From: Dimorphilus gyrociliatus
Taxonomy: Eukaryota; Animalia; Annelida
Direction of reading: 5' to 3'
Assembly (NCBI GenBank): GCA_904063045.1
Contig: CAJFCJ010000039.1
Coordinates: 1 to 64,000 of the forward strand
Length of the DNA: 64,000 nt
Numbering within the stretch: the stretch's first letter is position 1; each line of letters begins with the position of its first letter. The position numbers and the translations under genes are program-made. Positions 1 through 50,660 of the stretch are shown piece after piece. The notes under the pieces were generated by a model. It was given only the letters and a program-made list of their open reading frames with translations, had not been told where the DNA came from and made no database searches.

Positions 1-3000
1 TGTGAGACTGAATTTTGTGGTAAATTGTCTGGTGAATAGCCTGTATTGGTTGTTCAATTCCTTGTGAATCCTTAACAATTACATCATTGCCATCCTTATC
101 AGTAATCTGATTGTAACTTTTTCTACATTGTCTGTGATTTCAATGTAACTCTATCAATTTCAACATTATCTCCTTCAGATACTCTGATTTGGACTGTTGG
201 GTTTTCGTCATTTACACTTTCCCATAATGTTGGAGAAGTTGGATAATGTCTTGTGGATTTCCGCTTGATACTGTAATATCATCAGGTTGAATGACCTTGT
301 CATCATCCATGATTTCTTGACAATAAGTGACTGTTGTTGTTGATGGAGAGGTGGTTGTACCACTTGTTGTTCCAGTTGTTGTTCCAGTTGTTGTTCCAGT
401 TGTTGTACCAGTGGTGTTCCAGTGTTGTTCCTGTTGTTGTTGTTTCTAAAAAGTAAGAATAGAGCACAAGTAGAAAATTTACATTTTAAGAAAAAATTTA
501 TATGCTGATTGATTAATGTAAAAATATATATAAATATATACATATCTATATATGTAAAATAAAAAACAAAAAGACAATTTACCTGGTTTAACACAAGCAA
601 GAATTTCCACTTTGGTTGTGACTGGTGTATCTTTGTCAGTTTTGGTGAAGGTCAATGTTACTTTAGTGCCCTTTGTCAATGCTAGATTATCTGGTATATC
701 ATCTGGAGAATATCCATCTTCTGGTTGATCATTTCCATCAGAATCTTTAACAGGAACATCATTGCCATCCTTATCTGTGATAGTGATCTTCACTTTGTCA
801 ACATTTTCAGGATTTATCAATGTTACTCTATCAATTTCTTCATCATCATTTTCAGATATTGTTACTGTGACAGTTGGGTATCGTGTATTAGATTTTGGAA
901 TAATATCTGTTGGTGTTCCACTGCTAGTTTCAATATCATCAGGTTGAATAATGCTCTCTTCATCCATGATTTCTTGACAAAGTGTTGGTGTTGTTGTTGA
1001 TGGTGTTGAAGTTGTACCACTTGTAGTTTTGGTTGTTGTACCAGTAGTTGTACCAGTAGTAGTACCAGTAGTAGTACCAGTAGTTGTTCCAGTAGTTGTA
1101 CCAGTAGTTGTTCCAGTTGTAGTTCCTGTAGTTGTTCTGTTGTTGTTGTCTCTGAATAAGGGTAGAAAAAAATTGAATATTTGTGCATAAATTTTTTGGT
1201 TTTTTTTAGGTTTAAACAAATTAATTTACAAACCTTCCTCAGAACAAGCCAATATTGTTACTTGTGTTTTTACTGGTTCATTTGGAATGACTTTGTGAAT
1301 GTTAAAGTGACTGTGGTAGCAAGTGTGAGACTGAATTTTTGTGGTAAATTGTCTGGTGAATAGCCTGTATCTGGTTGTTCAATTCCTTGTGAATCCTTAA
1401 CAATTACATCATTGCCATCCTTATCAGTGAATCTGATTGTAACTTTTTCTACATTGTCTGGTGATTTCAATGTAACTCTATCAATTTCAACATTATCTCC
1501 TTCAGATACTCTGATTGTGACTGTTGGGTTTTCGTCATTTACACTTTCCATAATGTTGGAGAAGTTGGGATAATGTCTTGTGGATTTCCGCTTGATACTG
1601 TAATATCATCAGGTTGAATGACCTTGTCATCATCCATGATTTCTTGACAATAAGTGACTGTTGTTGTTGATGGAGAGGTGGTTGTACCACTTGTTGTTCC
1701 AGTTGTTGTTCCAGTTGTTGTTCCAGTTGTTGTACCAGTGGTTGTTCCAGTGGTTGTTCCTGTTGTTGTTGTTTCTAAAAAGTAAGAATAGAGCACAAGT
1801 AGAAAATTTTACATTTTAAGAAAAAAATTTATATGCTGATTGATTAATGTAAAAATATATATAAATATATACATATCTATATATGTAAAATAAAAAACAA
1901 AAAGACAATTTACCTGGTTTAACACAAGCAAGAATTTCCACTTTGGTTGTGACTGGTGTATCTTTGTCAGTTTTGGTGAAGGTCAATGTTACTTTAGTGC
2001 CCTTTGTCAATGCTAGATTATCTGGTATATCATCTGGAGAATATCCATCTTCTGGTTGATCATTTCCATCAGAATCTTTAACAGGAACATCATTGCCATC
2101 CTTATCTGTGATAGTGATCTTCACTTTGTCAACATTTTCAGGATTTATCAATGTTACTCTATCAATTTCTTCATCATCATTTTCAGATATTGTTACTGTG
2201 ACAGTTGGGGTATCGTCATTATCACCACTTGTCCATGGTGTATTAGATTTTGGAATAATATCTGTTGGTGTTCCACTGCTAGTTTCAATATCATCAGGTT
2301 GAATAATGCTCTCTTCATCCATGATTTCTTGACAAAGTGTTGTGTTGTTGTTGATGGTGTTGAAGTTGTACCACTTGTAGTTTTGGTTGTTGTACCAGTA
2401 GTTGTACCAGTAGTAGTACCAGTAGTAGTACCAGTAGTTGTTCCAGTAGTTGTACCAGTAGTTGTTCCAGTTGTAGTTCCTGTAGTTGTTCCTGTTGTTG
2501 TTGTCTCTGAATAAGGGTAGAAAAAAATTGAATATTTGTGCATAAATTTTTTGGTTTTTTTTAGGTTTAAACAAAATTAATTTACAAACCTTCCTCAGAA
2601 CAAGCCAATATTGTTACTTGTGTTTTTACTGGTTCATTTGGAATGACCTTTGTGAATGTTAAAGTGACTGTGGTAGCAAGTGTGAGACTGAATTTTTGTG
2701 GTAAATTGTCTGGTGAATAGCCTGTATCTGGTTGTTCAATTCCTTGTGAATCCTTAACAATTACATCATTGCCATCCTTATCAGTGAATCTGATTGTAAC
2801 TTTTTCTACATTGTCTGGTGATTTCAATGTAACTCTATCAATTTCAACATTATCTCCTTCAGATACTCTGATTGTGACTGTTGGGTTTTCGTCATTTACA
2901 CTTTCCCATAATGTTGGAGAAGTTGGGATAATGTCTTGTGGATTTCCGCTTGATACTGTAATATCATCAGGTTGAATGACCTTGTCATCATCCATGATTT

Positions 3001-6000: not shown

Positions 6001-9000
6001 TCCAGTTGTTGTTCCAGTTGTTGTACCAGTGGTTGTTCCAGTGGTTGTTCCTGTTGTTGTTGTTTCTAAAAAGTAAGAATAGAGCACAAGTAGAAAATTT
6101 TACATTTTAAGAAAAAAATTTATATGCTGATTGATTAATGTAAAAATATATATAAATATATACATATCTATATATGTAAAATAAAAAACAAAAAGACAAT
6201 TTACCTGGTTTAACACAAGCAAGAATTTCCACTTTGGTTGTGACTGGTGTATCTTTGTCAGTTTTGGTGAAGGTCAATGTTACTTTAGTGCCCTTTGTCA
6301 ATGCTAGATTATCTGGTATATCATCTGGAGAATATCCATCTTCTGGTTGATCATTTCCATCAGAATCTTTAACAGGAACATCATTGCCATCCTTATCTGT
6401 GATAGTGATCTTCACTTTGTCAACATTTTCAGGATTTATCAATGTTACTCTATCAATTTCTTCATCATCATTTTCAGATATTGTTACTGTGACAGTTGGG
6501 GTATCGTCATTATCACCACTTGTCCATGGTGTATTAGATTTTGGAATAATATCTGTTGGTGTTCCACTGCTAGTTTCAATATCATCAGGTTGAATAATGC
6601 TCTCTTCATCCATGATTTCTTGACAAAGTGTTGGTGTTGTTGTTGATGGTGTTGAAGTTGTACCACTTGTAGTTTTGGTTGTTTCATAGTTGTACCAGTA
6701 GTTGTACCAGTAGTAGTACCAGTAGTTGTTCATTGTTGTTCCAGTTTGTACCAGTAGTTTTCCAGTTGTACAGTAGTTGTACCAGTGGTTGTTCCAGTTG
6801 TTGTTCTTGTTTTCCTTAGTAGTACTGTATTTCAGTAGTTTTTTTGTTGTACATTTGTACTGTTGTTTTCCAGTAGTTGTACCTTTGTTTACTGTAGTTT
6901 ACCAGTAGTAGTACCAGTAGTTGTACCAGTAGTTGTTCCAGTTGTAGTTCCTGTAGTTGTTCCTGTTGTTGTTGTCTCTGAATAAGGGTAGAAAAAAATT
7001 GAATATTTGTGCATAAATTTTTTGGTTTTTTTTAGGTTTAAACAAAATTAATTTACAAACCTTCCTCAGAACAAGCCAATATTGTTACTTGTGTTTTTAC
7101 TGGTTCATTTGGAATGACCTTTGTGAATGTTAAAGTGACTGTGGTAGCAAGTGTGAGACTGAATTTTTGTGGTAAATTGTCTGGTGAATAGCCTGTATCT
7201 GGTTGTTCAATTCCTTGTGAATCCTTAACAATTACATCATTGCCATCCTTATCAGTGAATCTGATTGTAACTTTTTCTACATTGTCTGGTGATTTCAATG
7301 TAACTCTATCAATTTCAACATTATCTCCTTCAGATACTCTGATTGTGACTGTTGGGTTTTCGTCATTTACACTTTCCCATAATGTTGGAGAAGTTGGGAT
7401 AATGTCTTGTGGATTTCCGCTTGATACTGTAATATCATCAGGTTGAATGACCTTGTCATCATCCATGATTTCTTGACAATAAGTGACTGTTGTTGTTGAT
7501 GGAGAGGTGGTTGTACCACTTGTTGTTCCAGTTGTTGTTCCAGTTGTTGTTCCAGTTGTTGTTCCAGTTGTTGTACCAGTGGTTGTTCCAGTGGTTGTTC
7601 CTGTTGTTGTTGTTTCTAAAAAGTAAGAATAGAGCACAAGTAGAAAATTTTACATTTTAAGAAAAAAATTTATATGCTGATTGATTAATGTAAAAATATA
7701 TATAAATATATACATATCTATATATGTAAAATAAAAAACAAAAAGACAATTTACCTGGTTTAACACAAGCAAGAATTTCCACTTTGGTTGTGACTGGTGT
7801 ATCTTTGTCAGTTTTGGTGAAGGTCAATGTTACTTTAGTGCCCTTTGTCAATGCTAGATTATCTGGTATATCATCTGGAGAATATCCATCTTCTGGTTGA
7901 TCATTTCCATCAGAATCTTTAACAGGAACATCATTGCCATCCTTATCTGTGATAGTGATCTTCACTTTGTCAACATTTTCAGGATTTATCAATGTTACTC
8001 TATCAATTTCTTCATCATCATTTTCAGATATTGTTACTGTGACAGTTGGGGTATCGTCATTATCACCACTTGTCCATGGTGTATTAGATTTTGGAATAAT
8101 ATCTGTTGGTGTTCCACTGCTAGTTTCAATATCATCAGGTTGAATAATGCTCTCTTCATCCATGATTTCTTGACAAAGTGTTGGTGTTGTTGTTGATGGT
8201 GTTGAAGTTGTACCACTTGTAGTTTTGGTTGTTGTACCAGTAGTTGTACCAGTAGTTGTACCAGTAGTAGTACCAGTAGTTGTTCCAGTTGTTGTTCCAG
8301 TTGTTGTACCAGTAGTTGTTCCAGTTGTAGTACCAGTAGTTGTACCAGTGGTTGTTCCAGTTGTTGTTCCTGTTGTTGTTCCTGTAGTAGTACCTGTAGT
8401 TGTACCAGTAGTTGTTCCTGTTGTTGTACCAGTTGTGGTACCTGTTGTTGTTCCAGTAGTTGTACCTGTTGTTGTACCTGTAGTTGTACCAGTAGTAGTA
8501 CCAGTAGTTGTACCAGTAGTTGTTCCAGTTGTAGTTCCTGTAGTTGTTCCTGTTGTTGTTGTCTCTGAATAAGGGTAGAAAAAAATTGAATATTTGTGCA
8601 TAAATTTTTTGGTTTTTTTTAGGTTTAAACAAAATTAATTTACAAACCTTCCTCAGAACAAGCCAATATTGTTACTTGTGTTTTTACTGGTTCATTTGGA
8701 ATGACCTTTGTGAATGTTAAAGTGACTGTGGTAGCAAGTGTGAGACTGAATTTTTGTGGTAAATTGTCTGGTGAATAGCCTGTATCTGGTTGTTCAATTC
8801 CTTGTGAATCCTTAACAATTACATCATTGCCATCCTTATCAGTGAATCTGATTGTAACTTTTTCTACATTGTCTGGTGATTTCAATGTAACTCTATCAAT
8901 TTCAACATTATCTCCTTCAGATACTCTGATTGTGACTGTTGGGTTTTCGTCATTTACACTTTCCCATAATGTTGGAGAAGTTGGGATAATGTCTGTGGAT

Positions 9001-36000: not shown

Positions 36001-39000
36001 TTTAGTGCCCTTTGTCAATGCTAGATTATCTGGTATATCATCTGGAGAATATCCATCTTCTGGTTGATCATTTCCATCAGAATCTTTAACAGGAACATCA
36101 TTGCCATCCTTATCTGTGATAGTGATCTTCACTTTGTCAACATTTTCAGGATTTATCAATGTTACTCTATCAATTTCTTCATCATCATTTTCAGATATTG
36201 TTACTGTGACAGTTGGGGTATCGTCATTATCACCACTTGTCCATGGTGTATTAGATTTTGGAATAATATCTGTTGGTGTTCCACTGCTAGTTTCAATATC
36301 ATCAGGTTGAATAATGCTCTCTTCATCCATGATTTCTTGACAAAGTGTTGGTGTTGTTGTTGATGGTGTTGAAGTTGTACCACTTGTAGTTTTGGTTGTT
36401 GTACCAGTAGTTGTACCAGTAGTTGTTCCAGTTGTTGTTCCAGTTGTTGTACCAGTAGTTGTTCCAGTTGTAGTACCAGTAGTTGTACCAGTGGTTGTTG
36501 TCTCTAAATAAGTGTAGAAAAAAATTGATTATTTGTGTATGAATTTTTTTTTTTTAGGTTTAAACAAAATTAGTTTTCAAACCTTCTTCAGAACAGGCTA
36601 AAATAGAGAGTTGTGTTTTTACTGGTTCATTTGGAATGACCTTTGTGAATGTTAAAGTTACTGTGGTAGCAAGTGTGAGACTGAATTTTTGTGGTAAATT
36701 GTCTGGTGAATAGCCTGTATCTGGTTGTTCAATTCCTTGTGAATCCCTAACCATGATATCATTGCCATCCTTATCAGTGAATCTGATTTTAACTTTTTCT
36801 ATATTTTCGTGATTTAATAAAGTAACCCTATCAATTTCAACATTATCTCCTTCAGATACTCTGATTGTGACTGTTGGGTTTTCGTCATTTACACTTTCCC
36901 ATAATGTTGGAGAAGTTGGGATAATGTCTTGTGGATTTCCACTTGATACTGTAATATCATCAGGTTGAATGACCTTGTCATCATCCATGATTTCTTGACA
37001 ATATGTGACTGTTGTTGTTGATGGAGAGGTGGTTGTACCACTTGTTGTTCCAGTTGTTGTTCCAGTTGTTGTTCCAGTTGTTGTACCAGTGGTTGTTCCT
37101 GTTGTTGTTGTTTCTAAAAAGTAAGAATAGAGCACAAGTAGAAAATTTTACATTTTAAGAAAAAAATTAATATGCTGATTGATTAATGTAAAAATATATA
37201 TAAATATATACATATCTATATATGTAAAATAATAAACAAAAAGACAATTTACCTGGTTTAACACAAGCAAGAATTTCCACTTTGGTTGTGACTGGTGTAT
37301 CTTTGTCAGTTTTGGTGAAGGTCAATGTTACTTTAGTGCCCTTTGTCAATGCTAGATTATCTGGTATATCATCTGGAGAATATCCATCTTCTGGTTGATC
37401 ATTTCCATCAGAATCTTTAACAGGAACATCATTGCCATCCTTATCTGTGATAGTGATCTTCACTTTGTCAACATTTTCAGGATTTATCAATGTTACTCTA
37501 TCAATTTCTTCATCATCATTTTCAGATATTGTTACTGTGACAGTTGGGATATCGTCATTATCACCACTTGTCCATGGTGTATTAGATTTTGGAATAATAT
37601 CTGTTGGTGTTCCACTGCTAGTTTCAATATCATCAGGTTGAATAATGCTCTCTTCATCCATGATTTCTTGACAAAGTGTTGGTGTTGTTGTTGATGGTGT
37701 TGAAGTTGTACCACTGGTAGTTTTGGTTGTTGTACGAGTAGTTGTACCTGTAGTAGTTTCAGTAGTAGTACCAGTAGTTGTTTCAGTTGTAGTTCCAGTG
37801 GTTGTACCAGAAGTGGTGAATGTTGTTGTTGCAGTTGTTGTTGATGTTGTTGCTATTTTGTGAAGTGTGATAATGAGTTATATATTATGTTAGAGAGAAT
37901 ATTTAATTACTTTTTTGATAGCAGGCATGAACTTTCAAGTTTGATATTTCTTGCTGTCCTCCACCACTTCCTGGAAATCCTGTTTGAACTAACTTGATCT
38001 TCAGTGTTGTAGTGCCTTGAACTTTAGGAATATCTAGTTGTATTGTAGTTGCCACAGGAGTATTTCCATTTGTCAGAATTGTTTTTGCCTGAAAATATTC
38101 TTTTACTGTTGTTCTGTGGTTTTTTTTAGGCCAACAGAAAATGTCCCTTAGTGAGATATTCGAAAACCATTTTTGTGAATGTAAAAGTGCAGGAGGAAGT
38201 AAAGTAGTGTTTGATCGGTAAGCAGGATAGGTTTTTTTAAGGGTGACAGACAATGATGAATGTTAGACATAGATAAGGGCTTTTTGAGGTTTAGGGTAAA
38301 GTCAAGCACTATGGGAAATTTTCTGTGGCTGCCATTTTTACCTGTGTATATTGATTATCAAATTCTAACTCTATTTCAGAAGCATATTTTGTTTCAAGAA
38401 ATATTTCTGCAAATGTTTCAGCAGAGTTAGTGAGTGTTATTGTTATAATTGTGTCCTCTAAATCAGCAGCTTGATATCCAATATCATCAAATAAATGACT
38501 GCTCTCTCTGCCAGGTGTTGAAGGTTTTGTTAAAGAGTAAATCATATCTCCTTCAGTGTAAACATCACGCATATTTTCTTGTGAACATATTTCTGTAGAG
38601 AAAAGGCTTTTTAGTGAACAAGTTGTAAATATAGAAGTTAAAAGCAAAGTCACAACGTGAAGGGCAATATGTAATTTTATAACAGTATTTCATGCGGTGC
38701 AATATTTTAATAAAAATGAATAAATAGAAATATATATTTAAAAATAATATTGACTTGGTGAAGATGTTGTAGTAATCGTAGTTGATGTGGAAGTTGTTGA
38801 GCATCCTTTTTCATCCTCTCCATTTTCGCAATCCATTTCGCCATCACAGATCTTGTCTAGTGGTAAACATTTCTTTTTTATGCCAACAAAGTAGCAGTTT
38901 TCCATTGGTTTCGTCCCTTCTTCACATTCTAAAAGATTTCAATTTTTACACAATAAGTCAATTAGAAAGTTAGAGAATGAGGTATCGAATTAAAATAATA

Positions 39001-39005
39001 AATGA

Positions 39006-39044
<39 letters not shown>

Positions 39045-42000
39045 GTGTTTATGCCTATATACATATATGTATATACGGTTATTTTGTAGCCCCATTCTCA
39101 TCTAATTAACAACAACAGCAAACTGACCACAATCAGTTTCATCATCGCATTCCTCATGGCAATCACAAATGCCATTGCAACGAGTACTTGGTGGTAAACA
39201 TAATTTTGAGACTGCACATTCATAGAAACCGTTTGCACATTGACTTGTAGTGGTACCTGGCGTTGTTGTAGTTGTTGTAGCAGTGGTTGATTGCGTTGTA
39301 GTTGTATGATAACATGCCCTAAGTAACAAATTCTCAAAACTTACAAATCCAGAACCGATTTTTTCCAGCACTTTTATCTCAAAGAATTGAGATTTTACTG
39401 GTGGTTTTATATCCATTATTAATTCTGCTTTATTAGAGCTATCCACTGTCATTGGTATCTATAATGATATTATTAGCTTGAGTGTTTATTTAATAATCCA
39501 TTTATTTTTTACCTCTGGACTAATACCACCAGCTGTAATAAACTGAACTCTTTTTATATTTGCTGTTTTGAATGCAATATGAGTAATTTGGTCGACCTCA
39601 ACATTGAAATCAATTCTCAAGGCAATATTATTTCCAGATATTATGCTGGCTGAATTGCTCTTCTCAAATGCTGATTTGGCATCAACTGAATATGCCTCTG
39701 CTCCAACAGATGTCAAAGTTGCACTTACAAGATTAACATTTTCGTAGTTAAATGCATCGCACAGTTCAGGTTCTATTAAAAAATAATTTTAAGTTAATGA
39801 ATATAAAATGAGTGATATTTTACTTGTTGTTGTTGCTGTTGTTGATCCAGTGCTTGTTGTTGAAGGTTTTCCACAAGCTATAATATCAAAATTTTTAATC
39901 TTGGGTATTCCTGAAGTAGCTTTCAAAATGAGAGTCAATTTTACAGCCTTTAAACCATCTAATGTTAATATTGAAGGGCTCCAAAAGCCTTGTTCACTTG
40001 GTGCTTCAATCTAGAAAATATCAATATTAAAACAAAATATAAAATTTGTAATTTTGATCTAGTCTTTGTAAATACCTCTTGTGGAACATCCATCTCGTCC
40101 TGTCCAGCTAACTTGACTCTATACTGAAGAGTTTTTACATCACCCAGTAGAAGGGAGTAACTTCCAATATAAATACTTCCATCATTGGGCTGAAGTTCAA
40201 AGGACCATTCTGCTACTCCATCGGCCATATCTTCAACTGTGGGTAAAAATACTGCACCTGAACCGGCAAGGGCGTTTATAGATGTAGCAGAATTTGATGT
40301 AGCAGATGTTATAATATTCTCGGTGTTCACATTATATTGTATATCCTCACAAATGCCTATTTAAAATGACATTTTTCTTTATTTTCATGTTTAATATAGA
40401 TTATGTAATTGTAATCGTACTTGATGTTGTGGTAGCTGTTGTGCTTGTTGTTGTTGTTTCTGGTACATGACAAACCTTCCCGAATAGATTAAAGACTTCG
40501 ATAGGTTGACCAGATGTTTTGGCAAATAGCTCTATCTCTATTTTTCCTATAGGTATTCCTGATGGAGAAATATGTAGAATACATTTATCACCATTGTAAC
40601 TTCCAGAAGTATCCAGCTAAAAGAAAAATATTAGAATATGAGATTTTTAAAAACAGCTTATTAACTCACATATTGCTTTTCCATTTCTGTTCCATCTTCT
40701 AATGTCACTTTGAAACTAAATTTGTTGATATTGCGAGCGAAAAATTCAAATTGATACAGGGTATTATCACCATCCATACTTGGTTTCAAAACTAGTTGTA
40801 CAATGTCATTTATTTCCGAATAACTTGTACCAAAGCCCTATTGTTAGAAAATCTTAATAGGTAAAATCTGATAAAAAATTTATCTGTTACCGATAAGGCA
40901 GCTTGTAAAGTGGCATCGTTGTTAGTCGAACTGGACACATCGAGAGAAGTTGGACTGGCCGAGTTGTAATCGTATACAGTTCCATCAACACAGATTTGTG
41001 ATGTGGTTGTTCCTGTTGTAGTACCAGTTGTAGTACCAGTTGTAGTACCAGTTGTAGTACCAGTTGTTGTGCCAGTTGTAGTACCAGTTGTAGTACCAGT
41101 TGTTGTGCCAGTTGTAGTACCAGTTGTAGTACCAGTTGTTGTGCCAGTTGTAGTACCAGTTGTAGTACCAGTAGTAGTTCCAGTTGTTGTTCCGGTGGTT
41201 GTACCAGTTGTTGTTCCAGTGGTTGTTGTTGGTTCTGTGTGACAAACTTTGACTTCAAAATCCTTAACGAGAATAGATGGTGCTCCATCGACTCGAAGCA
41301 TTGTGATTTTTAGGGAGCTTAGAACAAATCCGTCAAGGTTTAATGCAATAGTCAACCAAGCATTTTGGTTACTTGGCACTCCCTATAGAAAAGTTAAGAT
41401 ATTTTAAAGACTAAAAGACAAATGGTATTTAGATAACTGAATAAATACCGTTTTAATTGGAGTGGTAGAATCTCCATTATAAATATTGTATAATTTTACA
41501 TTTGTAATTGTTAATTTAAGTTTAATAATTCTTGTTTCTCCAAGCATATTTGGTGTCAAAACTAATGTTAATGAGTCAGCTTCTTCCTTATAAATGTCTT
41601 CGCTTCCCTATTGGACGGAATGGTATAGTGATGAACAAATGTTTCACTGTTATAAGAATTTAATAAACCTTTAAGGCTTTGTCAGTATCAGCAAATACTG
41701 CATTCTGATTAACCAAATTTAATATATTGGATGTTTCACTATCAAAACTGTATTCAGTGCCTTGTCCTTCCAAACAAACTTGAGCTAAAATAAGTGGAAG
41801 AAATGAGTAATGAACTATGCGAATAGGTGATTTTAATTACGTTGTGTTGTTGTTGTTGTTGGTGGAGTTGTTGTTGTTGCAGTTGTTGCTGGAAAAATTG
41901 TTTAATTAATATTTTAAGATATAATTTATTAATTAATCAATCAAAGTATACTTGTAACTGGTTTGTAACAAATAACTGCACGTAGTTTTCCAATGCTAAT

Positions 42001-45000
42001 TGGTTTGCCAGAATCATCTCTTGTGAGTGTGATAACAACCTTTCCTATTTTATAGCCATCTGAAAGGTTTGGTGAATATTTTACTTCATCTTCTGGATAA
42101 TCCTGTTTGTTTACAAAATAGAATTAGATTAAGAGATATTCATCTTTCTTCTCCATTACCCTTTCGTATTGAGCTGTTGCCCCGCTTGTTAAAAAGATTT
42201 TTACAGCTAAATTTTTAACATTTTTAACGGCATATTGTAATGAAATGAGTGAATTTTCTCCGACTTGACCAGCTTGAAGAACGATTTCAACTTCATTTTT
42301 ATTTTCTTCATAATATTCACCAGATCCATCAGCAATATCTGATGGAATTGCTGAGAACTCATTTTCACTTGTAAAGCTTCCTACTGATAGAGTATCCAGT
42401 GATTGGTAGTCGTAAGTCAACAAATCACCTCCATTCTCACATACTGGAGCTAGAATAAATCAGATATAAAAATATTACCATAATTATTAAATAATTAGTG
42501 TTTAATTAATGATTTTTATTTACAAGTAGTTGTTGGACTTGTTGTTGTTGTTAGTGTTGTTGTTGTTGCTGTTGTTGTTGTTGTTGGTGACGTAATACAT
42601 ACTTGGGCCGAAATTAATCCAACTTTAATAGAAGTGCCGTCATCTCTCTTTTCCAAAATAAGTTTAATGATACCCAAATTAATTCCAGCTTGTCCATTTA
42701 GTATTCTATCTTCTACACTTCCATCAGTGTTAGCCTGTAGTAGTTAATTTTTTATAAAATAGTCATGATGTTAGTTTGAAAATCCTACTTTTGTTGTTTG
42801 GGCGGTTCCTCCTGATTTGTATGTTATGTGCCAGTAAAATGATGCAACATTTTCAAAGCGAACTGCTATAGAGAGAACAAGAACATCTCCTTCAACGTTG
42901 GGGGAAAATTCAATTTCAACATTGTCATCGCTATTATACGAAATGTCTGTTCCTTTTAGAGCATCTTCAGCTGAAACGCCGGCAACGGAGTCAACGACGT
43001 TTAGAACTTTTGATTCAGAGTTTAAAACGGCAGGACTACCCTCCTCGCACTGATGAGCTAATAGATAAAAGTAATGTATAAGTATATATACAGATAAAAG
43101 ATACTTTAAACGTACGAGTTGAAGTGGTAGTGGTAAGAGTTGTTGTGGTTTGTTCAGTTGTTGTTGATTTTTCGTGAAGACATAGATCGGCTTGGACATT
43201 TAGAACACTTAAATCTTGTTCGTTATCTCGTTTTACAACAACCAATTTCACTTCTCTTAACAATACACCAGTTCCACTACCAGTTAAAGCAGTCTCGAAA
43301 AAGGCAGAGCCTTCCTCAACACTTTTCTAAAATGTTATATTTATATTTTATAACTTTATCACCTATAATTACTATTCTGTTAATTTTACCGTTGGTTTTA
43401 TTGTAGGCTCCTCAACGCCATTAAATTTAATTTCCCAATGATATTCTAGAGCGTTGATTAGTCTGACCTTAAATTTTAAGAAATATACATCTTTGTCAGA
43501 GTTTGGAAGGAATACAATAGTTATTCCTTGGTTGCTATTATATTGTGAACCAGAATTAAATAGAGCAGGGGAAAAGTCGTTTCCTGGGGCTTGTTCATCG
43601 TAGATGGTCAAACCAACTGAACCGGAAGCATACCTTTGAGGTTCGCCTTCAAGACACTCCAAGGCTATAAAAAACATTTAAAATTATTATTATTTGTCTA
43701 ATGATCTTTTAGCTAAAAACTTACGTGCTGTGGTTGTTGTTGATGAAACTGTAGTGGTCGTTCCAGTTGTTGTTCCGGTTGTTGTTCCGGTTGTTGTTCC
43801 AGTTGTTGTTCCTGTTGTTGTTCCAGTTGTTGTTCCTGTTGTTGTTCCAGTTGTTGTTCCAGTTGTTGTTCCTGTTGTTGTTCCTGTTGTTGTTCCAGTT
43901 GTTGTTCCAGTTGTTGTTGATTCTGTTGTGGTAGCTTGAAAGAGAAATAAAATTGTTTTAATATAAGTTTTAATAAAACATTGAAAGGTGTTTGTGTGTT
44001 TGTGCTGTAACACATACTTATAACTTCTCCACAAACTGTTCCGCCAAGTTCTTTAATTTCAACAGGTTTGCTTGTATCGGCTGATGTTAATCTGATTTCA
44101 ATTTTCTTGAAATTAAATCCTTCAGGATTGATTTTGATTGAAACTTTTACGAATTCATCGGTTGATGAAATGTCCTAAAATAGATAATAATCATTATAAA
44201 ATATCTAGGTCAATTTGCCGGTGGAAAAAAGAAATTACGCACGATAGGTGTAGATGACAATGCTCCATTGGCGTCTGTGAGTAAAGCTGTTCCTCCTGCT
44301 ACGTTCTTAACGAAGAAAGCTAGGCTTGACACGACATCTGGTCCATTTGAGAGAGGCTCAATTTTAAATTTTGTTTCGGCATTACCGGATACATCTCCGA
44401 ATGTTTCGTCTGATCCAAGTAAGGCATCGCTCATATCAATATTGCTTGTAGAAAGAAGAGAAAGTGCTAAAACTCTATTAGTAAAATCGAAAGGATTTTG
44501 TTCTCCTCCAATCACGCAAATCTTTGGTGGAGTTGTCGTTGTTGCGGTTGTTGTTTCGGTTGTTGTTGCAGTTGTAGTTTCTGTTGTAGTTCCTGTTGTT
44601 GTTGATTCTGTTGTTGTACTTGTAAAACAGTTAATCTCATCGCTTCCATCTCCACAATCATCGTGATTATCACATCTAATATTCATTGGCATACACTCTC
44701 CTGATTGACATCTGTAATATTTGTCTGGATCACATTCCTCTGTTGTACAATTCTTCTCATCAGAGTAATCATTCATTCCGCAATCTCTATGCGAATCGCA
44801 TCTAAATTCCTTTTTGATGCAAGCGCCTGACTCGCATTCAAACTCATCTTCATCACAAGTCGGTGGGTCTAGAATTTTGAAAAATTATTAATATTACTTC
44901 ATGCAAGATGTAAATGATTAATAAATGCTACATACGGCAATTAAATTCATCACTGTCGTCCTGACAATCGTAGTTTCCGTCGCAATGTAATGGCATATCA

Positions 45001-48000
45001 ATACATTGAATAGCATTCAAACAACGGAATTGACCGGGTTTACATTGGAATACTGTTCGGAATAAGATATAATTAAAAATGATGATAAATGAATAAAAGA
45101 AAGAGCAATACGTACTGCATTCTTCTTCATCGGAATTGTCTCCGCAATCATTCATTCCATCGCATTTAAATTCTATTGGGATGCATTTGTCAGTTTTGTT
45201 ACACTTGAATTCGTCGTCTTTACATTCAACAACGCATGGTGTACCAAAGCATTCAAATTTAGCGTTTTTACATGTGCAATTCATACAATTATTATAAACA
45301 ATAGATTCAGCTGGATATTCTTTGCCATTGTGAATACATGGACAATCTAAAGCTGGAACGCATTGATTGTTATCCAAAACTGTTCCCTGAGGACAGAAGC
45401 AGCCTTCCAAACAATGAGTATCTTGGCAGTAGGGCTCTGGTGCTTCTCCTATGTTTCTGCAGGTTTGAGGGCATGGTGGCCCGCATGGTCTGTACTCTTT
45501 ACCTCCCTCGCACATAACGGGACATAAATGTTGACTTCTCCATTTTACGTAGACTCCGTTCTTATTACAAACTTCGGCAAAATTAGCAATGGCTGTGCAC
45601 AAACATTCACAATCGCCTCCTCTGTTACATCCGCATGCGTCGTATTTGCATTCTTTATAATATTCAAGGAATGTAGGAACAACATCTCTGCAAGCAGCAA
45701 AGGCTGGTCCATCTGTAATGATTTTGCAAGAATCTTCAGCCCATTCTCTTCTATCTGGGAATTGTTCACAAGGATCTAATAGATCGTATGTGTGTGGTTT
45801 ATCAATGTTGCCACATTTTCCAGTAACTTCCCATTGCTGGGCAAATTCAGCAACAGTTTCAGCAGTTCCGAAATCATTTGAGGCGTCATTGTCAAAGTTA
45901 CCACACAAACCATTCACTTTATTCTGATGTCCTCTGCTGACGAACAAGTATACTCTGGTTCCACCATCCCATTGAACGCTTAGCCCAGAATCGTGTATAT
46001 TGATTATTGTAAATAATCCAGCTGGACCAACATAAATACCGTTATATCTAAGACTATCACCATAACCTACAGTGACATTGTCAACTTTGATATCAGCTCC
46101 TTGAATCATTTCAATTGAAACTCCATTAGCTAAAATTTTGATACTCTTTGTGCATGTAACACCACCAGTCCCGCAAGCGTGGTTCTTAGCAATAACAGTA
46201 AGTTGTGATCCTTCTGTGCTTTTAAGTAAATAATATGAACAACTTCCTTGGAAAGTGTATCTCTTTCCATCGAATGTATAGTAGTGAGGATCTCCAGAAG
46301 CCCAACAAACCGCTGGACAGTCTGCTGTTGATGGTTGTTTTTCCCATAAACCACCTTTGCATACGTATGTATTGCAACCATCTTTTAAGATATCAGCTTT
46401 ACCGTAATATTTATCGTTATGGAAACATGGGCAAGTATTGCTAGCAATACAATTTCCATCGTGATTTAAAACCAAACCATCTGGACATCCACAACCTTCG
46501 CGAGGTTCTTCTGGTTGGCAGTCAGCAATTCTCATGTAATCGAAGCAGGTAGCTCCACAGGTTTTTAAATCTTTTCTCCATTCTTGATTTTTTGGGCATT
46601 GTACTGAATCAGAGCAGGATTTTGTTCCGCAGTTCCAGCTGCCATTTGAGCATGTACAATTTGAACATGCTCTCCTGATAACTGATCCAGCATCTTTGTA
46701 TGGATTTAGGTGATCATTTTTATCGTAACAGGTACAATCTTTAACTTGGACGCACTGTCCACGATTATCTAATCTTTGACCAGTTGGACAACCGCAACCT
46801 CCGTAGCAGTTTTTATCTTCGCAACCCAAAGGATGTTCGAAATCCATACAGCTATTGCAAGATGAGAAACATTCATCATAGACTTCGCCATTTTTACATT
46901 GATATCCGTCGATATTTTTACATTTAAGTAATAGTCCTGTGTCACCTCTCCAGTTGATTTTAACTCCTTTTTCCATACATGCCTCGGCATAGGCAGCGAC
47001 AATATTACAGAATCCTAAATAGGAATTTTCATTGGCACACATATCATAATTACACATCTCTTTGTAGATTCGAGGATCGATAACGTCATGACACTCTTTT
47101 AAGACTCCTTCGTCGATAAATGCTTTGCATGTTGCATGGACTCCATCTCTTTTTTCTGTTTCAAGTGCGCATGGATCAATGTGTTGACCGACATTTGCCT
47201 TTGGAGTATCCGAACAGGTTGACTGCTTGAAGGAATTAACAAATTCGGACATAGTTGATATTGGTGCATTTGATCTTGGCACACGATCGTCGAGTGGGGA
47301 ACCGTTATAGTTGCCGCATAGACCTCTAACTTTATCAGCGTAATAAGGTGATAAGTAGACGTAAATTCTTCCATTTTTATCATAGCTGACTCTAAAACCA
47401 AAACCTCTTATGGTTGTGAGTAAAGAAGTTGATCGTGTAACAGATAATTCTGGTCTATAATACGGATTTGTAGCAACATTTGAGATTTCTCTTCCGTTAA
47501 TAACAGCAGCTACGTTTCTAAAAAGAAAAATATGGTTGAAAATTGATTTATTTCTCTTTTTAAACTTACCCTCCTGCAGCTTTCAAGAGTACTTTTACAT
47601 CGTTGTATTGAATAAAGACTGAAATTATAGAGGGAGTGCCTAATTTACCAAAATCTTCCATTGAATAGGCAATTTGTAAATTTCCTTTTCCTTCCGTTAC
47701 AACTGTGTTCCTTTCAACCAAAGTATATTGGCAATTGTCTCCTCTTAAGTCAAATGAATCTCCATCAAAAGTAGTAATATGTTGTAAACCGATGATTGAA
47801 CATTTCTTAGGACATCGTTTCTTTGTGCATATCCATCTACCGTATTTACATTCGCATGTATTACAATCTGGTTTGATTACATCACCAGAAGAATATCTCT
47901 TCATTTGATAAGAACAAGAGCAATCTCTAGCTTCTACGCAAGTGTTTGTCATTTCGTCCATAAAGGTTCCAGGTTTACAAGTACATCCGGGAACGCATTG

Positions 48001-50660
48001 GCTATCGCAAACATCGTGTGTAGCTGGGCTGAGGATATTTCTGCAGGTTTTTTGGCAACGATCAATGCAAGGTTTGTATGTCAAACCGGCTGGACATGTT
48101 CTTGCTTTAATGGAGAAAATAGAGAGACAGAGATGATTAATTATCAATATTCATCAAAAACTACAGTGAGAAACACTTACGACATCTGACATCTGTTCTG
48201 TAGTTAATGTAAACTCCTCTTGTAGCACATTCGAAAGAATATTGGAACATAAAGTCACAAAGTGCGGCATCAATTTCATTCTTTTTTTGTTGGTCGCTCA
48301 ATGAACTATGCATTATTCTACACATTTCATTAACGCAGAGATCGTAATGTCTCTTTGGCGAAAATTTACTTCTGCATGCGGAAAATGGCTCAAATTTCAA
48401 TTCTCCACATTTAACCTTGGCATTACGTTCGGTACTTTCATTAAGGCATTCCGGTTGAGCATTAGGCGCATCTGGACACTAGAAAAAAGATAAAAAGTCA
48501 ATACTTGAACATTCTTTTCACATTGCTAACAAAATAATGAAAAAAAATTTAAAGTTGATTGAATGCATTAGAAAAATTCAAAAAAAGCTTCAAAATTGGA
48601 AATTTGTTCAAAACTCTTCTTTCTAAAGTGCAATACTTTTTATAAATTTATCATTCAAGAGCAAACTGTGCACAAAATCGATTCAAAATTGTGGAATTCC
48701 ATTAAAAGCAGTATTTGACAGCATTGACTACTACCTCTAAATTTTTCGCTTTTTTGTCCTGAAAAGTCGTTGAATGTTTAATAATAATTAATGGAAGAGA
48801 GAGAGAGATATATAAATATCATTTAGTTCTAGTATACTAATATATAATCCACTTTAACCTTAATAAAATACCAATATTTTGGTGCGTTAATATGATTTTT
48901 CATCTTGTTCAATTCAATGTGCGAATAGTTAAAAAAAAAATAGGGAAAGTTTGTGCAACCTTTTTTTAACCTTAAAATAGTTTGCAAAGGACAAAAATAA
49001 GTTATTGCTTTTTGTTCAACTTACGTTTGACGCCTTGAAGAAAGAATAGAATTGTTTTGAAATGTAGATTTATACATAATCATTAATTGATAATATATAA
49101 ATTAACTTACGACTTCAGTCAAGCTGCTAACTAGGAAAGAATTTCCCATAGCTGATGGTACTCTGGCCAATACGCCGTTTCTTTGTTTCATATCGTTTAG
49201 AGCATCACCATCAAAGTTACCGCACAAACCGGAGATTGTTGTTGAACCGATAGCAGTTTTCAATTGATCGTCAATAGTCAAGAACCATGCTCTTGAATTT
49301 TCAACTGACCACTTTGATCTGATATCTCCGTATTCGAGAAAGATAAAGTCACCACTTCTCTCGAAAATAACATCTATAAAAAGAGTAAAAAATCGATTAA
49401 TCGCTGAATTAGAGAAGATGTGTGAAATTTAAGATTCGTACTTGATGACCTGGTTGTTCCACCAGCTGCTACGGTTATTGGTTCGTTGTTAACTTTAATA
49501 TCCTCTCCGGAAGCAACAACTGTTGTTTGCGAATTCAAGTAGAATAAAAGAGTCTTTTTGCAGGTTGAATAAGCTTGGCATTCGTTCATTTTTATGTTTA
49601 TTGTTTTAATTCCGTCATTCATCAATGTATATTCGCATTGTCCTTGGAAAATATACTCCAAACCGTCGAAAGATCTGTAAACTTTTGTTCCATAGGACAT
49701 ACATGTATGAAATCCAATATTTTTGTCTTGATCAACGACTTCCGGTTTTGTTGGATCGGTTGAACCTTCGCCAGCTTTTGGACATTCGATACACGTAGAG
49801 TTGGATGAACCCCAAGTTTTTCCACCTCTTGTACAACAATCCTCATAAGTAGTTGTTATTTGACCAACGTCTTGAGCCTTAGGACCCCAACAGAATCCTT
49901 GGGCGAAACAATACTTAAGACTAGTTGTTATGGCATCTTTATTATCCTGACAACGATAGCCTGAGTATCCAGCGTCACATTTGCATTCGTCTGGAACGAA
50001 ACATGTCCCACGCTCGCACGGAGGAGTGCAAATGGGAGTTTCGCATCCTACTCCTGTCCATTGCGGACAACAACGCCGAACAATTTCAACATCGTTCCTG
50101 TAAAAGACGTAAAGATAAGATTTTCCTTATTAATTCTCTATAGTAATTTAGTGTTAATTACTTTTCGAAGACGCAAATGTCATTGGAATTTCCAGCTATC
50201 CATTGGGATGTCCTCGCTTGAAATTCTTGATTTGAATCGCCACCGAATCCGCTAAGTTCTTTACTTACGGACCATATTCCCAGTCTCATTTGGATTTCTG
50301 TGCAAGGAGCACTTTCCTTCTTTATAACGGGTACGGTATCATTGCAGTATTTCGCAGTTCTGAGTGGTTATTGGAGAATGGGGATGGTGGGTGGTAGGGA
50401 GGAGGAGGAAACAAAAAAAGCAAAATTAAGTTATAAGTCATACCGTTGATTTGTTGGTAGAGAAAATAAGAAAGTTATCCTTTTTTTTAAATATTATTTG
50501 TCATATCCAAAAGTTAACAGACTTTTTGCTTTTATTAATTTTGAACATTTATGAATTTTGTTTGTCGGCTTTCTTTTTAAATTAAAATTGTTTACCCGAG
50601 AGTCGTAAATGCCAAAAGAAGTAAGCCGGTAAGGAAGGGATTCCTTGGCCCAAAAATCAT
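1..50660 (-). CDS. Giant secreted SCO-spondin/mucin-like protein (SP-EMI-EGF-TB-like-3x[VWD-C8-TIL]-4xLDLa-8x discoidin-like-2xLDLa-at least 53 more discoidin-like domains with Thr-rich linkers); 3' end lies beyond the window
   Basis: Exons joined by hand via GT-AG sites with consistent phases: 50596-50660, 50162-50359, 49442-50097, 49111-49373, 48181-48478, 47570-48104, 45116-47517, 44936-45052, 44243-44868, 44018-44174, 43725-43934, 43390-43664, 43116-43326, 42789-43057, 42524-42734, 42160-42449, 41952-42102, 41841-41888, 41669-41784, 41449-41607, 40891-41382, 40670-40837, 40421-40616, 40076-40356, 39824-40010, 39513-39772, 39128-39458, 38755-38928, 38342-38592, 37911-38088 (9,775 nt, open frame), then 52 array exons. 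Family assignment is by recognised motifs. Confidence 0.88.
3271..3864 (-). CDS. Representative short array exon B (594 nt, 198 aa): (GTTT)9 linker + [10 protein letters not shown]...ILACVKP domain
   Basis: Phase 1-1 exon bounded by TTCAG|AG and CCAG|GTAAAT. Confidence 0.9.
3948..4490 (-). CDS. Representative array exon A (543 nt, 181 aa): (GTTT)5 linker + [10 protein letters not shown]...ILACSEE domain
   Basis: Phase 1-1 exon with length divisible by 3. A 555-nt variant has one extra GTTT. Confidence 0.9.
4630..5439 (-). CDS. Representative long array exon B (810 nt, 270 aa): (GTTT)27 linker + domain B
   Basis: Same splice sites as short B; 216 nt (18 x 12 nt) longer. Confidence 0.9.
18604..19533 (-). 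CDS. Extra-long array exon B (930 nt): (GTTT)37 linker from an internal 120-nt duplication
   Basis: 19212-19331 is repeated at 19332-19451; frame is preserved. Confidence 0.85.
36583..37852 (-). CDS. Diverged first unit of the array: exon B0 (37253-37852) and exon A0 (36583-37113)
   Basis: Same splice phases. B0 has a non-GTTT linker start ([15 protein letters not shown]..). A0 carries substitutions ([25 protein letters not shown]). Confidence 0.85.
37911..44530 (-). CDS. Nine divergent two-cysteine beta-rich domains (discoidin/FA58C-like, inferred) separated by Thr-rich linkers, with two LDLa repeats before the ninth
   Basis: Each ~130-150 aa module opens with a Cys just after a Thr run and closes with a beta-strand plus Cys (TVCGE, DLCLH, QVCIT, VICYK, KVCHT, KVCHV, IACGK, RACYH, HACYQ). 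Eight of nine have a central NV/NI/DV motif (NA in the second; not clear in the ninth). All are encoded on 2-3 short exons. Confidence 0.75.
38755..39250 (-). CDS. Two LDLa-type repeats embedded among the discoidin-like domains
   Basis: [37 protein letters not shown] (end of exon 39128-39458). Exon 38755-38928, absent from the ORF track in this frame, reads [43 protein letters not shown]. Confidence 0.8.
39011..39036. repeat. (AT)n microsatellite in an intron of the giant gene
   Basis: Direct reading; lies inside the 199-nt intron 38929-39127. Confidence 0.9.
44636..45225 (-). CDS. Cluster of four LDL-receptor class A repeats
   Basis: [24 protein letters not shown]; [24 protein letters not shown]; [26 protein letters not shown]; [25 protein letters not shown]. 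All have six Cys and the acidic DCxDxSDE signature. Confidence 0.92.
45230..49710 (-). CDS. Three von Willebrand D assemblies (VWD-C8-TIL, with extra TIL/VWC-like modules)
   Basis: VWD starts [28 protein letters not shown] and [19 protein letters not shown] motifs [31 protein letters not shown]8 motif [36 protein letters not shown] motif [17 protein letters not shown]. Confidence 0.93.
49779..50359 (-). CDS. N-terminal EMI-like, EGF-like and TB/follistatin-N-like modules (exons 2-3)
   Basis: KYCNDTV..SAPCTE..DICVFEK|[18 protein letters not shown] (EMI-type CC-P-x-W ending). [27 protein letters not shown] (EGF, 49950-50030). [30 protein letters not shown] (49779-49910). Confidence 0.7.
50596..50660 (-). 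CDS. First coding exon: signal peptide [22 protein letters not shown]
   Basis: ATG at 50660, hydrophobic core, phase-2 donor GG|GTAAAC matching the phase-2 acceptor at 50359. Confidence 0.8.

Follow-up and report, generated by a model that had tools for sequence, protein, structure and literature searches.

A giant secreted protein of the annelid Dimorphilus gyrociliatus with at least 61 discoidin-like beads on poly-threonine tethers, a likely mucus or adhesive scaffold

What kind of secreted protein is encoded by a gene whose head recalls SCO-spondin and the gel-forming mucins, and whose body is a long array of nearly identical small domains on threonine-rich tethers? The question is raised by a minus-strand gene on the D. 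gyrociliatus contig CAJFCJ010000039.1, of which positions 1-64,000 were analysed (the window, 64,000 nt). A first-pass annotation, made from the DNA letters, had proposed a spliced gene running from a signal peptide at 50660 through a head with three VWD domains and LDLa modules into 9 divergent and 52 homogenised two-Cys domains, amounting to about 14,000 aa in the window. We recovered this structure, starting from an ATG at 50660, and found that the gene is expressed and spliced. The protein length within the window is 3,259 + 10,577 + ~148 aa, or ~13,980 aa. The features of the gene, from its start codon onwards, are as follows.

50596..50660, minus strand: exon 1 (22 residues), with the start codon and a signal peptide, read from the sequence
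45228..50359, minus strand: EMI-like Cys-rich region with a ten-residue motif, EGF-like module and three VWD-C8-TIL units (D1, D2, D'D3), from Pfam; EMI from the motif only
44610..45227, minus strand: four LDL-receptor class A modules adjoining the third TIL, from Pfam Ldl_recept_a
39260..44560, minus strand: discoidin-like domains D1-D8, mostly of two exons each, with Thr-rich linkers between them, two of which are long (TTTG)n tracts; from the gene model, hhalign, TRF and RNA
38756..39259, minus strand: two more LDLa modules, between discoidin-like domains D8 and D9, from Pfam and RNA introns
37911..38592, minus strand: D9, in two exons (38592-38342 and 38088-37911), from the gene model, RNA contigs and an hhalign profile
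37853..37910, minus strand: head-to-array intron of 58 nt, GT..AG, phase 1, with its donor after 37911 and its acceptor before 37852, from the sequence and RNA contigs
1..37852, minus strand: homogenised array of 26 A and 25 B exons, with a further B exon truncated at the window edge, from the exon map, RNA and DNA depth

The head was modelled by dynamic programming, and D2 and the 5' end were adjusted by hand. The resulting model has 31 exons from 50660 to 37911, contains no stop codons and uses GT-AG introns throughout, most of them 51-83 nt long. Exon 1 was read from the sequence; it encodes a hydrophobic core, has a GT donor after 50596 and joins exon 2 in frame at 50359. Spliced RNA contigs from three runs confirmed ten introns, nine in the head and one A-to-B splice of the array (37253/37113), the latter being present in all three runs. 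The junction of head and array (37911>37852), which had been predicted in the first-pass annotation, was likewise supported by spliced RNA contigs. Contig 19 of run X4 (530 nt) spans 38592-38341 and 38087-37911 and carries 101 further letters, while a second contig of equal depth (22.4), in which 37797 is 46 letters away from the end, fits 37852-37752 exactly. Contig 11 of run X2 has eight non-intron letters, and seven of these eight positions agree with the start of exon 37852. Head and array are transcribed and spliced as one message. A search of positions 37000-64000 against Rfam gave no match. The array continues past the window start (position 1), and the 3' end of the gene lies beyond the window.

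The array comprises 51 complete exons, from 37852 down to 583, in which exons of type A (137-aa core) alternate with exons of type B (136-aa core). Each exon starts with a (TTTG)n tract, between 9 and about 40 units long, and continues into an acidic two-Cys domain, with phase-1 introns of ~83 and ~139 nt alongside. The (TTTG)n repeats contain no proline and Thr makes up 36% of each A+B unit; the domains, or beads, have a pI of ~4.1 and a net charge of -13 to -22. Identity between copies approaches 100% and extends to the introns, and among copies of equal length the core is identical at the DNA level in 19 of 22 A exons and 21 of 22 B exons. Together with the nine divergent domains of the head, the 52 array exons bring the protein to at least 61 units, each consisting of a poly-Thr tether and a compact acidic bead of discoidin fold.

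The frame had been described as running through the window with no stop, which does not stand for the assembly as given: 15 complete array exons out of 51 are frame-broken, containing in-frame stops and having lengths indivisible by three. These breaks, together with the near-identity of the copies down to their introns, as in over-polished repeats, and the run of the array off the window edge, could be taken to mean that most of the array was produced by mis-assembly or is degenerating, and that the genuine gene stops close to the head. We consider this very improbable, since spliced RNA contigs join head to array and A to B, RNA depth over the array is higher than that over the head (~11-30 word depth across head exons in the three runs) by a factor of 20-60, and short-read DNA depth is 19-24 times the single-copy depth of the head, not far from the assembled number of 26 A and 26 B exons. 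The breaks themselves are single G/C deletions that fall in a different place in each copy and cluster in poor patches (for example, 22 in 6680-6977), with at most three substitutions per exon and none in most. The published D. gyrociliatus assembly was built from PacBio reads with PBcR. Because the deletions are scattered single G/C losses with almost no substitutions, the frame breaks look like PacBio consensus errors rather than decay, and the intactness of the 15 broken exons is inferred from this error pattern. For annotation, this means that a ~50-kb gene holds many long-read indel errors in its array.

Upstream of the array, the head contains nine divergent domains (D1-D9), each 132-140 aa long and having Cys at both termini. 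Searching the head directly with an HMM profile of the array domains gave weak matches (best 1.4e-4), so that profile-profile comparison was needed to link the two sets. By hhalign, the D1-D9 profile matched the array-domain family with a probability of 92.5% and an E-value of 4.8e-7, and the alignment ends on the terminal Cys. RNA contigs reproduced the modelled introns between 40891 and 39458 exactly, and the 253-nt intron of D9 was present in contigs of runs X2 and X4. TRF found 12-nt repeats at 41015-41220 and 43760-43918.

The N-terminal part of the head has the D1-D2-D'D3 arrangement. Pfam detected VWD-C8-TIL three times, with VWD, C8 and TIL matches in exons 49443-50096, 49111-49371, 48182-48478, 47572-48102 and 45117-47516. 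The last of these is a big exon with an ORF of 784 aa; in a phmmer search of the PDB it matched FCGBP, MUC5AC, MUC2 and VWF D'D3 with E-values from 1e-206 (FCGBP) to 1e-138, those for MUC2, MUC5AC and VWF D'D3 being about 1e-138 to 1e-146. Ahead of these units, the EMI-like region has a CCPxW motif and six Cys in the expected places; neither of its exons gave a Pfam EMI match, the domain being split by the intron 50162/50097, and a homologue search with the exon carrying its end returned one unnamed fragment. The CGLC motif serves multimer assembly in VWF and mucins, and this tetrapeptide is absent at the GLCGN motifs of the head. In total, Pfam identified five LDLa modules and a weak sixth. 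One lies in 45117-47516 (residues 764-800), one in 44937-45050 and two in 44243-44866; of the pair between D8 and D9, that in 38756-38926 scored E 1.6e-6 and that in 39102-39452 a weak 0.12, and the introns 38928/39128 and 38592/38755 in this stretch were present in RNA contigs. No VWD domain beyond the first three was found in the ~12,000 aa that follow within the window, and no exon scanned, in head or array, matched TSP1 (Pfam TSP_1) or CysD (Mucin2_WxxW).

These domains invite comparison with SCO-spondin, in which the FA5/8C domain sits between two LDLa groups. The two proteins share three VWD domains with TIL, many LDLa modules, a discoidin domain and giant size; the putative EMI-like Cys-rich region of the D. 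gyrociliatus protein lies at the N-terminal position that EMI has in SCO-spondin, and the polymers that SCO-spondin forms are predicted, from the sequence, for the D. gyrociliatus protein as well. The SCO-spondin trait of an LDLa cluster directly after the third VWD-C8-TIL unit was found by Pfam (cf. PMC4948705), and to this extent the SCO-spondin-like character attributed to the head is borne out; the lack of TSP1 in every exon scanned does not fit it. Chick SCO-spondin (Q2PC93) has one FA5/8C domain, 13 LDLrA and 27 TSP1 repeats (PMC8487547). It further differs in its VWC and CTCK domains and in having no mucin backbone, whereas the D. gyrociliatus protein has no TSR in ~14,000 aa. The gene could nonetheless be a true SCO-spondin orthologue, secreted by glia-like or neuroepithelial cells as a fibre or matrix rather than as an epidermal mucus or adhesive. 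The CCPxW motif at the N-terminus, the LDLa cluster, the placement of discoidin-like domains between two LDLa groups, the position of invertebrate mucin-like proteins next to SCO-spondin in the tree of Lang et al. 2016 (PMC4948705) and the SCO-spondin transcript of another annelid, Owenia, in radial-glia-like cells (PMC5543218) would all agree with this. We nevertheless regard it as unlikely, given the absence of TSP1 repeats from the ~14,000 aa in the window against 27 in chick (PMC8487547), a body that is a mucin-like Thr backbone, and a limpet protein with the same head that is a component of pedal mucus, with expression in the pedal sole (PMC7333891). In searches with the head, the named matches of the VWD3 exon were vertebrate mucins only, in a search whose length filter hides giant proteins, and in the protein atlas the head fell into generic VWD clusters, which do not separate SCO-spondin from mucin.

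The identity of the repeated module was examined by structure. The AlphaFold (AF2) model of the bead had a pLDDT of 96.4 and a pTM of 0.90. VIA-align superposed 126-130 of its 137 residues at 2.7-3.0 A (Z 13-14) on DDR1/2, NRP1 b1, FVIII C2, CASPR2 and lactadherin C2, and bead residues 1..137 aligned onto full domain ranges (DDR1 32-185, NRP1 b1 276-424). Foldseek results agreed: among the Swiss-Prot AlphaFold models the best 30 matches were all FA58C domains, and among the AFDB clusters the top matches were F5/8 type C with a TM of 0.75. Discoidin domains are disulfide-closed at their ends. The terminal Cys of the bead model map onto these ends, where a closing disulfide is predicted; C137 is invariant in the family alignment, and C1 is present in every copy that includes the start. 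On the strength of the model, the assignment of the repeated module as a discoidin-fold domain holds, and the discoidin-like label of the first-pass annotation was well chosen, though Pfam at its threshold finds nothing.

At the sequence level the bead is far less conspicuous. At the gathering score, Pfam F5_F8_type_C (PF00754) matched none of the array A and B exons, the D1-D9 exons or nine distant relatives, one of which (P0004) came nearest, with 22.1 bits where 28.2 is the cut-off (E 1.7e-4). A PDB profile search with the domain family gave mostly spurious ubiquitin matches, the meaningful one being the CBM32 entry 4a42 (E 0.012), and the protein atlas gave weak F5/8 leads (score 0.64). 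Among 1.84 billion representatives, 40 matched at E up to 0.001, unrelated bacterial proteins being among these matches, and a search with another relative (P0007) returned itself and P0003 only. The closest relatives (P0046, P0047 and P0048) have the same order, with the LDLa cluster coming after three VWD-TIL units. One public contig (L001) is collinear from VWD2 through VWD3 and LDLa into PTS and bead repeats, and a second (L002) carries the D3 end, LDLa and bead repeats in the same order. The bead defines a discoidin subfamily that is invisible to Pfam and very rare in public protein sets.

The first-pass annotation had recognised the architecture in no characterised protein, a view of its novelty that is too strong, as F5_F8 and PTS mucin-like proteins, hemolectin (PMC4948705) and P-vulgata_3 (PMC7333891) are known. 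P-vulgata_3, from the adhesive pedal mucus of the limpet Patella vulgata, is expressed and localised in the pedal sole; it has three vWFD, C8, TIL and five LDLa domains and was called homologous to the first third of SCO-spondin (PMC7333891). By reported domain content, its head composition matches that of the D. gyrociliatus gene, and both species are lophotrochozoan. The published sequence differs in being 1,604 aa long and incomplete at one end, with neither discoidin beads nor a Thr array reported. Lang et al. 2016 characterised lophotrochozoan mucin-like proteins by F5_F8 domains with PTS, and described insect hemolectin as three VWD, F5_F8 and two VWD (PMC4948705). With both, the D. gyrociliatus protein shares three VWD-C8-TIL units and, after them, discoidin (F5_F8) domains with PTS. 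The lophotrochozoan mucin-like proteins, however, have CysD among their F5_F8 domains, whereas the D. gyrociliatus gene has more than 60 Pfam-invisible beads, an LDLa cluster and no CysD. The F5_F8 domains of hemolectin are seen by Pfam and are followed by two more VWD, in contrast to the D. gyrociliatus gene, which has no later VWD in the window. A clotting or agglutinating factor of the hemolectin/hemocytin type, released from coelomocytes or at sites of wounding, with its beads as lectins, in order to catch microbes and close injuries, would accord with the discoidin fold of the bead. Such a role appears improbable to us: hemolectin has two discoidin domains and then two more VWD, where the D. 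gyrociliatus protein has over 60 beads and lacks any later VWD within 14,000 aa, and neither LDLa modules nor Thr tracts of such great length belong to hemolectin. The RNA depth of the head exons (~11-30) is uninformative on cell type.

The vertebrate gel-forming mucins MUC2, MUC5AC and MUC5B resemble the protein in their D1-D2-D'D3 head (~30% identity, E about 1e-140) and in a long repeat region of O-glycosylation type, punctuated by small disulfide-closed globular domains, glycosylation being predicted from sequence in the D. gyrociliatus protein. As proposed, a Thr-rich backbone is interrupted by the beads as these mucins are by CysD domains; a CysD-like cross-linking role for the beads may follow by analogy. 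The punctuating domain of the vertebrate mucins is nevertheless CysD, with many Cys and WxxW, and not a discoidin fold with two Cys; LDLa modules are absent from these mucins, and in place of (TTTG)n they have repeats rich in Pro/Thr/Ser, the D. gyrociliatus linkers being free of proline. Discoidin domains also occur in the temporary adhesives of echinoderms, where Nectin has six and Sfp1 combines discoidin with VWD, C8, lectin and EGF domains, and the discoidin domains were reported to bind galactose and GlcNAc (PMC7037938). These proteins resemble ours as secreted adhesive or cohesive proteins with several discoidin domains, to which Sfp1 adds VWD and C8. They differ in having between four and six discoidin domains, in lacking LDLa and an array on Thr tethers, and in coming from another phylum. 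The likeness is taken as a functional analogy and not as evidence of whole-protein homology.

Collectively, we favour, with a probability of about 0.78, a secreted, polymerising mucin-like glycoprotein of D. gyrociliatus that is likely to be a mucus or adhesive scaffold. From what is known of the family, the head would, like that of VWF and the gel-forming mucins, cause the protein to form disulfide-linked multimers within the secretory pathway, and the Thr tracts would be densely O-glycosylated into stiff bottle-brush spacers. The beads may take the position of CysD as non-covalent cross-linking nodes, or as nodes that bind glycans or Ca2+, yielding a multivalent gel; their DKDGND/DSDGND loops are candidate Ca2+ sites. 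By analogy with P-vulgata_3, its likely use would be in mucus for ciliary gliding, in temporary adhesion or in a cocoon matrix. Mucin-type end-to-end dimerisation needs a C-terminal CTCK/VWD4 region, which in this gene would fall outside the window. The missing CGLC tetrapeptide of the head and the lack of proline in the linkers, in contrast to classical PTS regions, count against the mucin-like reading.

The protein is an extreme form of a known invertebrate mucin type and not wholly new. It reveals how lophotrochozoan mucus and adhesive proteins continue behind their SCO-spondin-like head, in a part that transcriptomes are unable to assemble: poly-Thr tethers there carry discoidin beads in an array of 10,000 aa. 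More tentatively, and we hold this as a possibility that is rather doubtful, a conserved, unnamed family of LDLa-discoidin mucins may keep the ancestral state of SCO-spondin, namely a gel-forming mucin of a mucociliary sole with a discoidin-punctuated backbone. The single vertebrate FA5/8C domain would then be a relic of such an array, the TSRs would have expanded later, and the acidic beads, binding O-glycans on adjacent tethers, would serve as lectin or Ca2+ nodes that cross-link themselves. If true, this would give molecular support to the descent of Reissner's fibre from sole mucus. D. gyrociliatus, an annelid of small size that is tractable and moves by gliding with cilia and mucus, could be used to test whether lectin-fold beads can play the role of CysD in a mucin gel, and whether proteins of the SCO-spondin family began as sole mucins.

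The mucin gene lies on the minus strand, and its head was modelled with a dynamic programme on codon usage and splice sites, hand-corrected at two places. The head comprises 31 exons, from the ATG at 50660 to the donor at 37911, with no stops and with introns that are all GT-AG and mostly 51-83 nt long. One intron inside VWD1 (48479-49110, minus strand) measures 632 nt, about ten times the usual length in this gene. Exon 1 encodes a plausible signal peptide, as judged by eye, and an EGF-like module and an EMI-type motif were recognised by eye in the N-terminal region, as expected of an EMI-EGF start. Pfam made no EMI call on either half of the candidate domain because an intron splits it. VWD, C8 and TIL were each detected three times in the head by Pfam, with four LDLa modules immediately after the third TIL and one clear and one weak LDLa match further along. 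The 784-aa ORF of the large exon matched the D'D3 regions of MUC2, MUC5AC and VWF with E-values of ~1e-138 to 1e-146, and FCGBP with an E-value of 1e-206. Beyond the LDLa cluster lie nine divergent domains (beads D1-D9) of 132-140 aa with Cys at both ends, one of which has a third Cys. They are spaced by Thr-rich linkers, with two LDLa modules between the eighth and ninth. The GPCR gene listed below is divergent from the mucin start, ~1.1 kb away.

Neighbouring gene and ORF
51777-53164, plus strand: rhodopsin-family GPCR gene of several exons (Pfam 7tm_1 on three ORF pieces, best E-value 3.8e-8)
56740-57006, minus strand: ORF with a partial RRM_1 match (GFVTFASR...LRLEFAKS; E-value 0.006)

The window is AT-rich (~34% GC), strand skew is strong between 1 and ~44000, and Tandem Repeats Finder reported a dozen arrays of the 12-nt unit GTTGTACCAGTA, which become (TTTG)n when read on the minus strand. 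According to the ORF listing and the sequence, one repeat unit is one exon, in which an acceptor (...ttcag or ...tttag) is followed by an E-TTTT-G(TTTG)n opening, a ~136-aa domain with Cys as its first and last residue, and a closing phase-1 GT donor. Mapping of canonical donors and acceptors placed 51 complete array exons from 37852 to 583, in strict alternation of 26 A exons (137-aa core) and 25 B exons (136-aa core). The A and B cores are 63% identical, the array introns are ~83 and ~139 nt long, and exon 52 starts at 445 and is truncated by the window edge, beyond which the 3' end of the gene lies. The array coding total is 31,730 nt (10,577 aa); head, array and partial exon together sum to ~13,980 aa, in agreement with the ~14,000 aa of the first-pass annotation. 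The linkers fall into length classes (window 1-37852, minus strand), at ~173 or 389 nt for A (one of 509) and 125 or 137 nt for B, and identical 1,575-nt A+B units run in succession from ~12200 to ~19600. Together, these two features suggest recent unequal crossing-over of double units.

The frame had initially been read as free of stops. This held for the 31 head exons, but in the array, as assembled, 15 of the 51 complete exons have lengths that are not multiples of three and contain stops. When the 15 broken exons were aligned to intact copies, a single exon had a core substitution (1) and two exons had linker substitutions (1 and 3); the others had none. The frame breaks were single-base indels, in nearly all of which a GG or CC pair had lost one base, at positions that differed from copy to copy. 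Two patches were indel-rich: exon 10144-9339 had seven indels in its core, and 6680-6977, ~300 nt of one linker, had 22 small deletions; substitutions across both totalled three, all in 6680-6977. Inherited mutations in a homogenising array are expected to be common to the copies and accompanied by substitutions; a pattern of scattered deletions, each private to one copy, and hardly any substitutions is the hallmark of long-read consensus that was left uncorrected. The Dimorphilus gyrociliatus genome paper describes a PacBio/PBcR assembly (10.1101/2020.05.07.078311). The pattern of deletions, taken with this assembly type, argues that the array reading frame is probably continuous in life. Gene models over 6680-6977 and 9339-10144 need correction with accurate reads.

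Contigs from four public sequencing runs (X1-X4) were placed on 36560-41000. X1 is genomic and its contigs continue through introns. Contigs of X2, X3 and X4 are spliced, and X2 and X3, labelled 'DNA?' and '?', are on this basis transcriptomes. The modelled introns listed below were matched exactly; introns upstream of 40891 are from the gene model, the RNA contigs covering 36560-41000.

Modelled introns exactly matched in spliced contigs
40837/40891, minus strand
40616/40670, minus strand
40356/40421, minus strand
40010/40076, minus strand
39772/39824, minus strand
39458/39513, minus strand
38928/39128, minus strand
38592/38755, minus strand
38088/38342, minus strand

The A-to-B array splice 37253/37113 was also present in spliced contigs. 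At the head/array junction, X4 contig 19 (530 nt, depth 22.4) lay on 38592-38341 and 38087-37911 with 101 extra letters, and a contig of equal depth included 37797, which lay 46 letters away from its end, as predicted for 37852-37752. The eight letters of X2 contig 11 past 37911 mismatched the intron, and seven of the eight agreed with the start of exon 37852. Array word depth, a rough measure, was 19-24x single-copy in the X1 DNA and, relative to the head in RNA, ~20x in X2, ~28x in X4 and ~60x in X3. Collectively, the splices, junction contigs and depth ratios show that the array is genuine, that its copy number (from word depth) is roughly as assembled, and that it is transcribed with the head. 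The proposed continuity of head and array was thereby supported by RNA, both at the junction 37911>37852 and in the array exons. In X4, a coral metatranscriptome, the transcript was ~92-100% identical, varying by exon, which suggests that a close relative of the source animal was present in the coral sample.

Pfam found no family in the A, B or D1-D9 bead exons, and an A+B profile searched against 1.84 billion representative proteins gave only 40 matches at E-values up to 0.001. Among these, short fragments matched best over the full length, and they share the bead layout of Cys, GM.DP..IP...I..SSG....LRP....PW.S and then ...ACFE, with Thr/Pro/Ser linkers between. Some of the lower-ranking matches (P0017, P0024) were rejected as kin, being unrelated bacterial repeat proteins. 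A sub-threshold F5_F8_type_C match was found in one relative (E-value 1.7e-4), and the bead family profile matched the CBM32 structure 4a42 with an E-value of 0.012. An AlphaFold2 bead model from a 17-row alignment reached a pLDDT of 96.4 and a pTM of 0.90, and Foldseek with this model returned neuropilin b1/b2, DDR1/2, CBM32, F-type lectin and factor VIII C2. The best 30 Swiss-Prot AlphaFold matches were without exception FA58C domains of animals, aligned over their whole length, and the top AFDB clusters were F5/8 type C proteins (TM 0.75). VIA-align gave Z-scores of 13-14, with 126-130 of 137 residues at 2.7-3.0 A, and mapped residues 1-137 to the whole discoidin domain, terminal Cys pair positions included. 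The model confidence and structural matches indicate that the bead is a predicted discoidin-fold domain, trimmed to 137 residues compared to ~155; the discoidin-like module first proposed is thus borne out by structure where Pfam is blind. The D1-D9 bead profile matched the array family with an hhalign probability of 92.5% (E-value 4.8e-7), so the nine divergent domains are of the same kind as the array beads. Both bead types are highly acidic (A, net -22, pI 4.05; B, net -13). Residues 77-92 of A (e.g. 14013-14060, minus strand) carry the loop motifs DKDGND and DSDGND, of which B has the first only, and from their likeness to calcium loops our guess is that the beads may bind calcium.

Relatives were found in two public contigs. 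L001 (Logan run, 1-13171) encodes VWD2, TIL, VWD3, C8, TIL and several LDLa modules, in that order, and L002 (ENA metagenome assembly, 1-12877) the C8/TIL end of D3 and LDLa modules. Downstream, both have Thr/Pro-rich linkers and several copies of the same bead, collinear with the mucin gene, but with longer introns and several beads per exon. The closest protein relatives of the VWD3 exon, P0046 (78% identity), P0048 (47%) and P0047 (41%), likewise continue from D3 into LDLa modules. These layouts indicate that the gene belongs to a conserved yet unnamed family and is no one-off.

Lang et al. 2016 (PMC4948705) placed invertebrate mucin-like proteins nearest SCO-spondin; in their account hemolectin has 3 VWD, F5_F8 and 2 VWD domains, and F5_F8 domains, together with CysD and PTS, characterise the lophotrochozoan mucin-likes. 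The domains of chick SCO-spondin are EMI, 3 VWD, 13 LDLrA, one FA5/8C, 27 TSR and CTCK (PMC8487547). The mucin gene has the head and the LDLa modules in common with SCO-spondin; however, filing it as SCO-spondin was dropped because TSR are absent from its ~14,000 aa within the window. Within the window, the gene has neither a further pair of VWD units, as in hemolectin, nor CysD domains like those of vertebrate mucins. The architecture had been put forward as unrecognised, which is too broad given the known F5_F8 mucin-likes (PMC4948705), but several features are new: the scale, with more than 60 beads in near-identical copies including introns; the phase-1 design of one exon per unit; the (TTTG)n tether; the LDLa modules; and a bead subfamily that Pfam misses.

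The gene gives one message for a very large secreted protein, in which a D1-D2-D'D3 head of VWF/mucin type is combined with LDLa modules and at least 61 discoidin beads held on Thr tethers. By analogy with these families, the head would drive disulfide multimerisation in the secretory pathway and the Thr tracts would form O-glycosylated stiff brushes. CysD domains are folded nodes between brushes in MUC2 and MUC5, and the beads may be comparable. Glycan binding is common among discoidin and CBM32 domains, and the beads may bind glycans or calcium. Such a protein would make a multivalent gel or adhesive, and we put the probability of a mucus/adhesive scaffold at about 0.78. A protein whose head has the same composition is known from limpet pedal mucus and localises to the pedal sole (PMC7333891), and echinoderm temporary adhesives contain multi-discoidin proteins, of which Sfp1 combines discoidin, VWD and C8 (PMC7037938).

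Helm et al. 2017 reported that annelid radial-glia-like cells express SCO-spondin, and they cite the proposal that Reissner's fibre is the remnant of a mucociliary sole (PMC5543218). It is doubtful that the mucin gene supports such an origin. With a SCO-spondin-headed mucin in a ciliary glider, the idea linking Reissner's fibre and the sole would be open to testing by in situ hybridisation and phylogeny.
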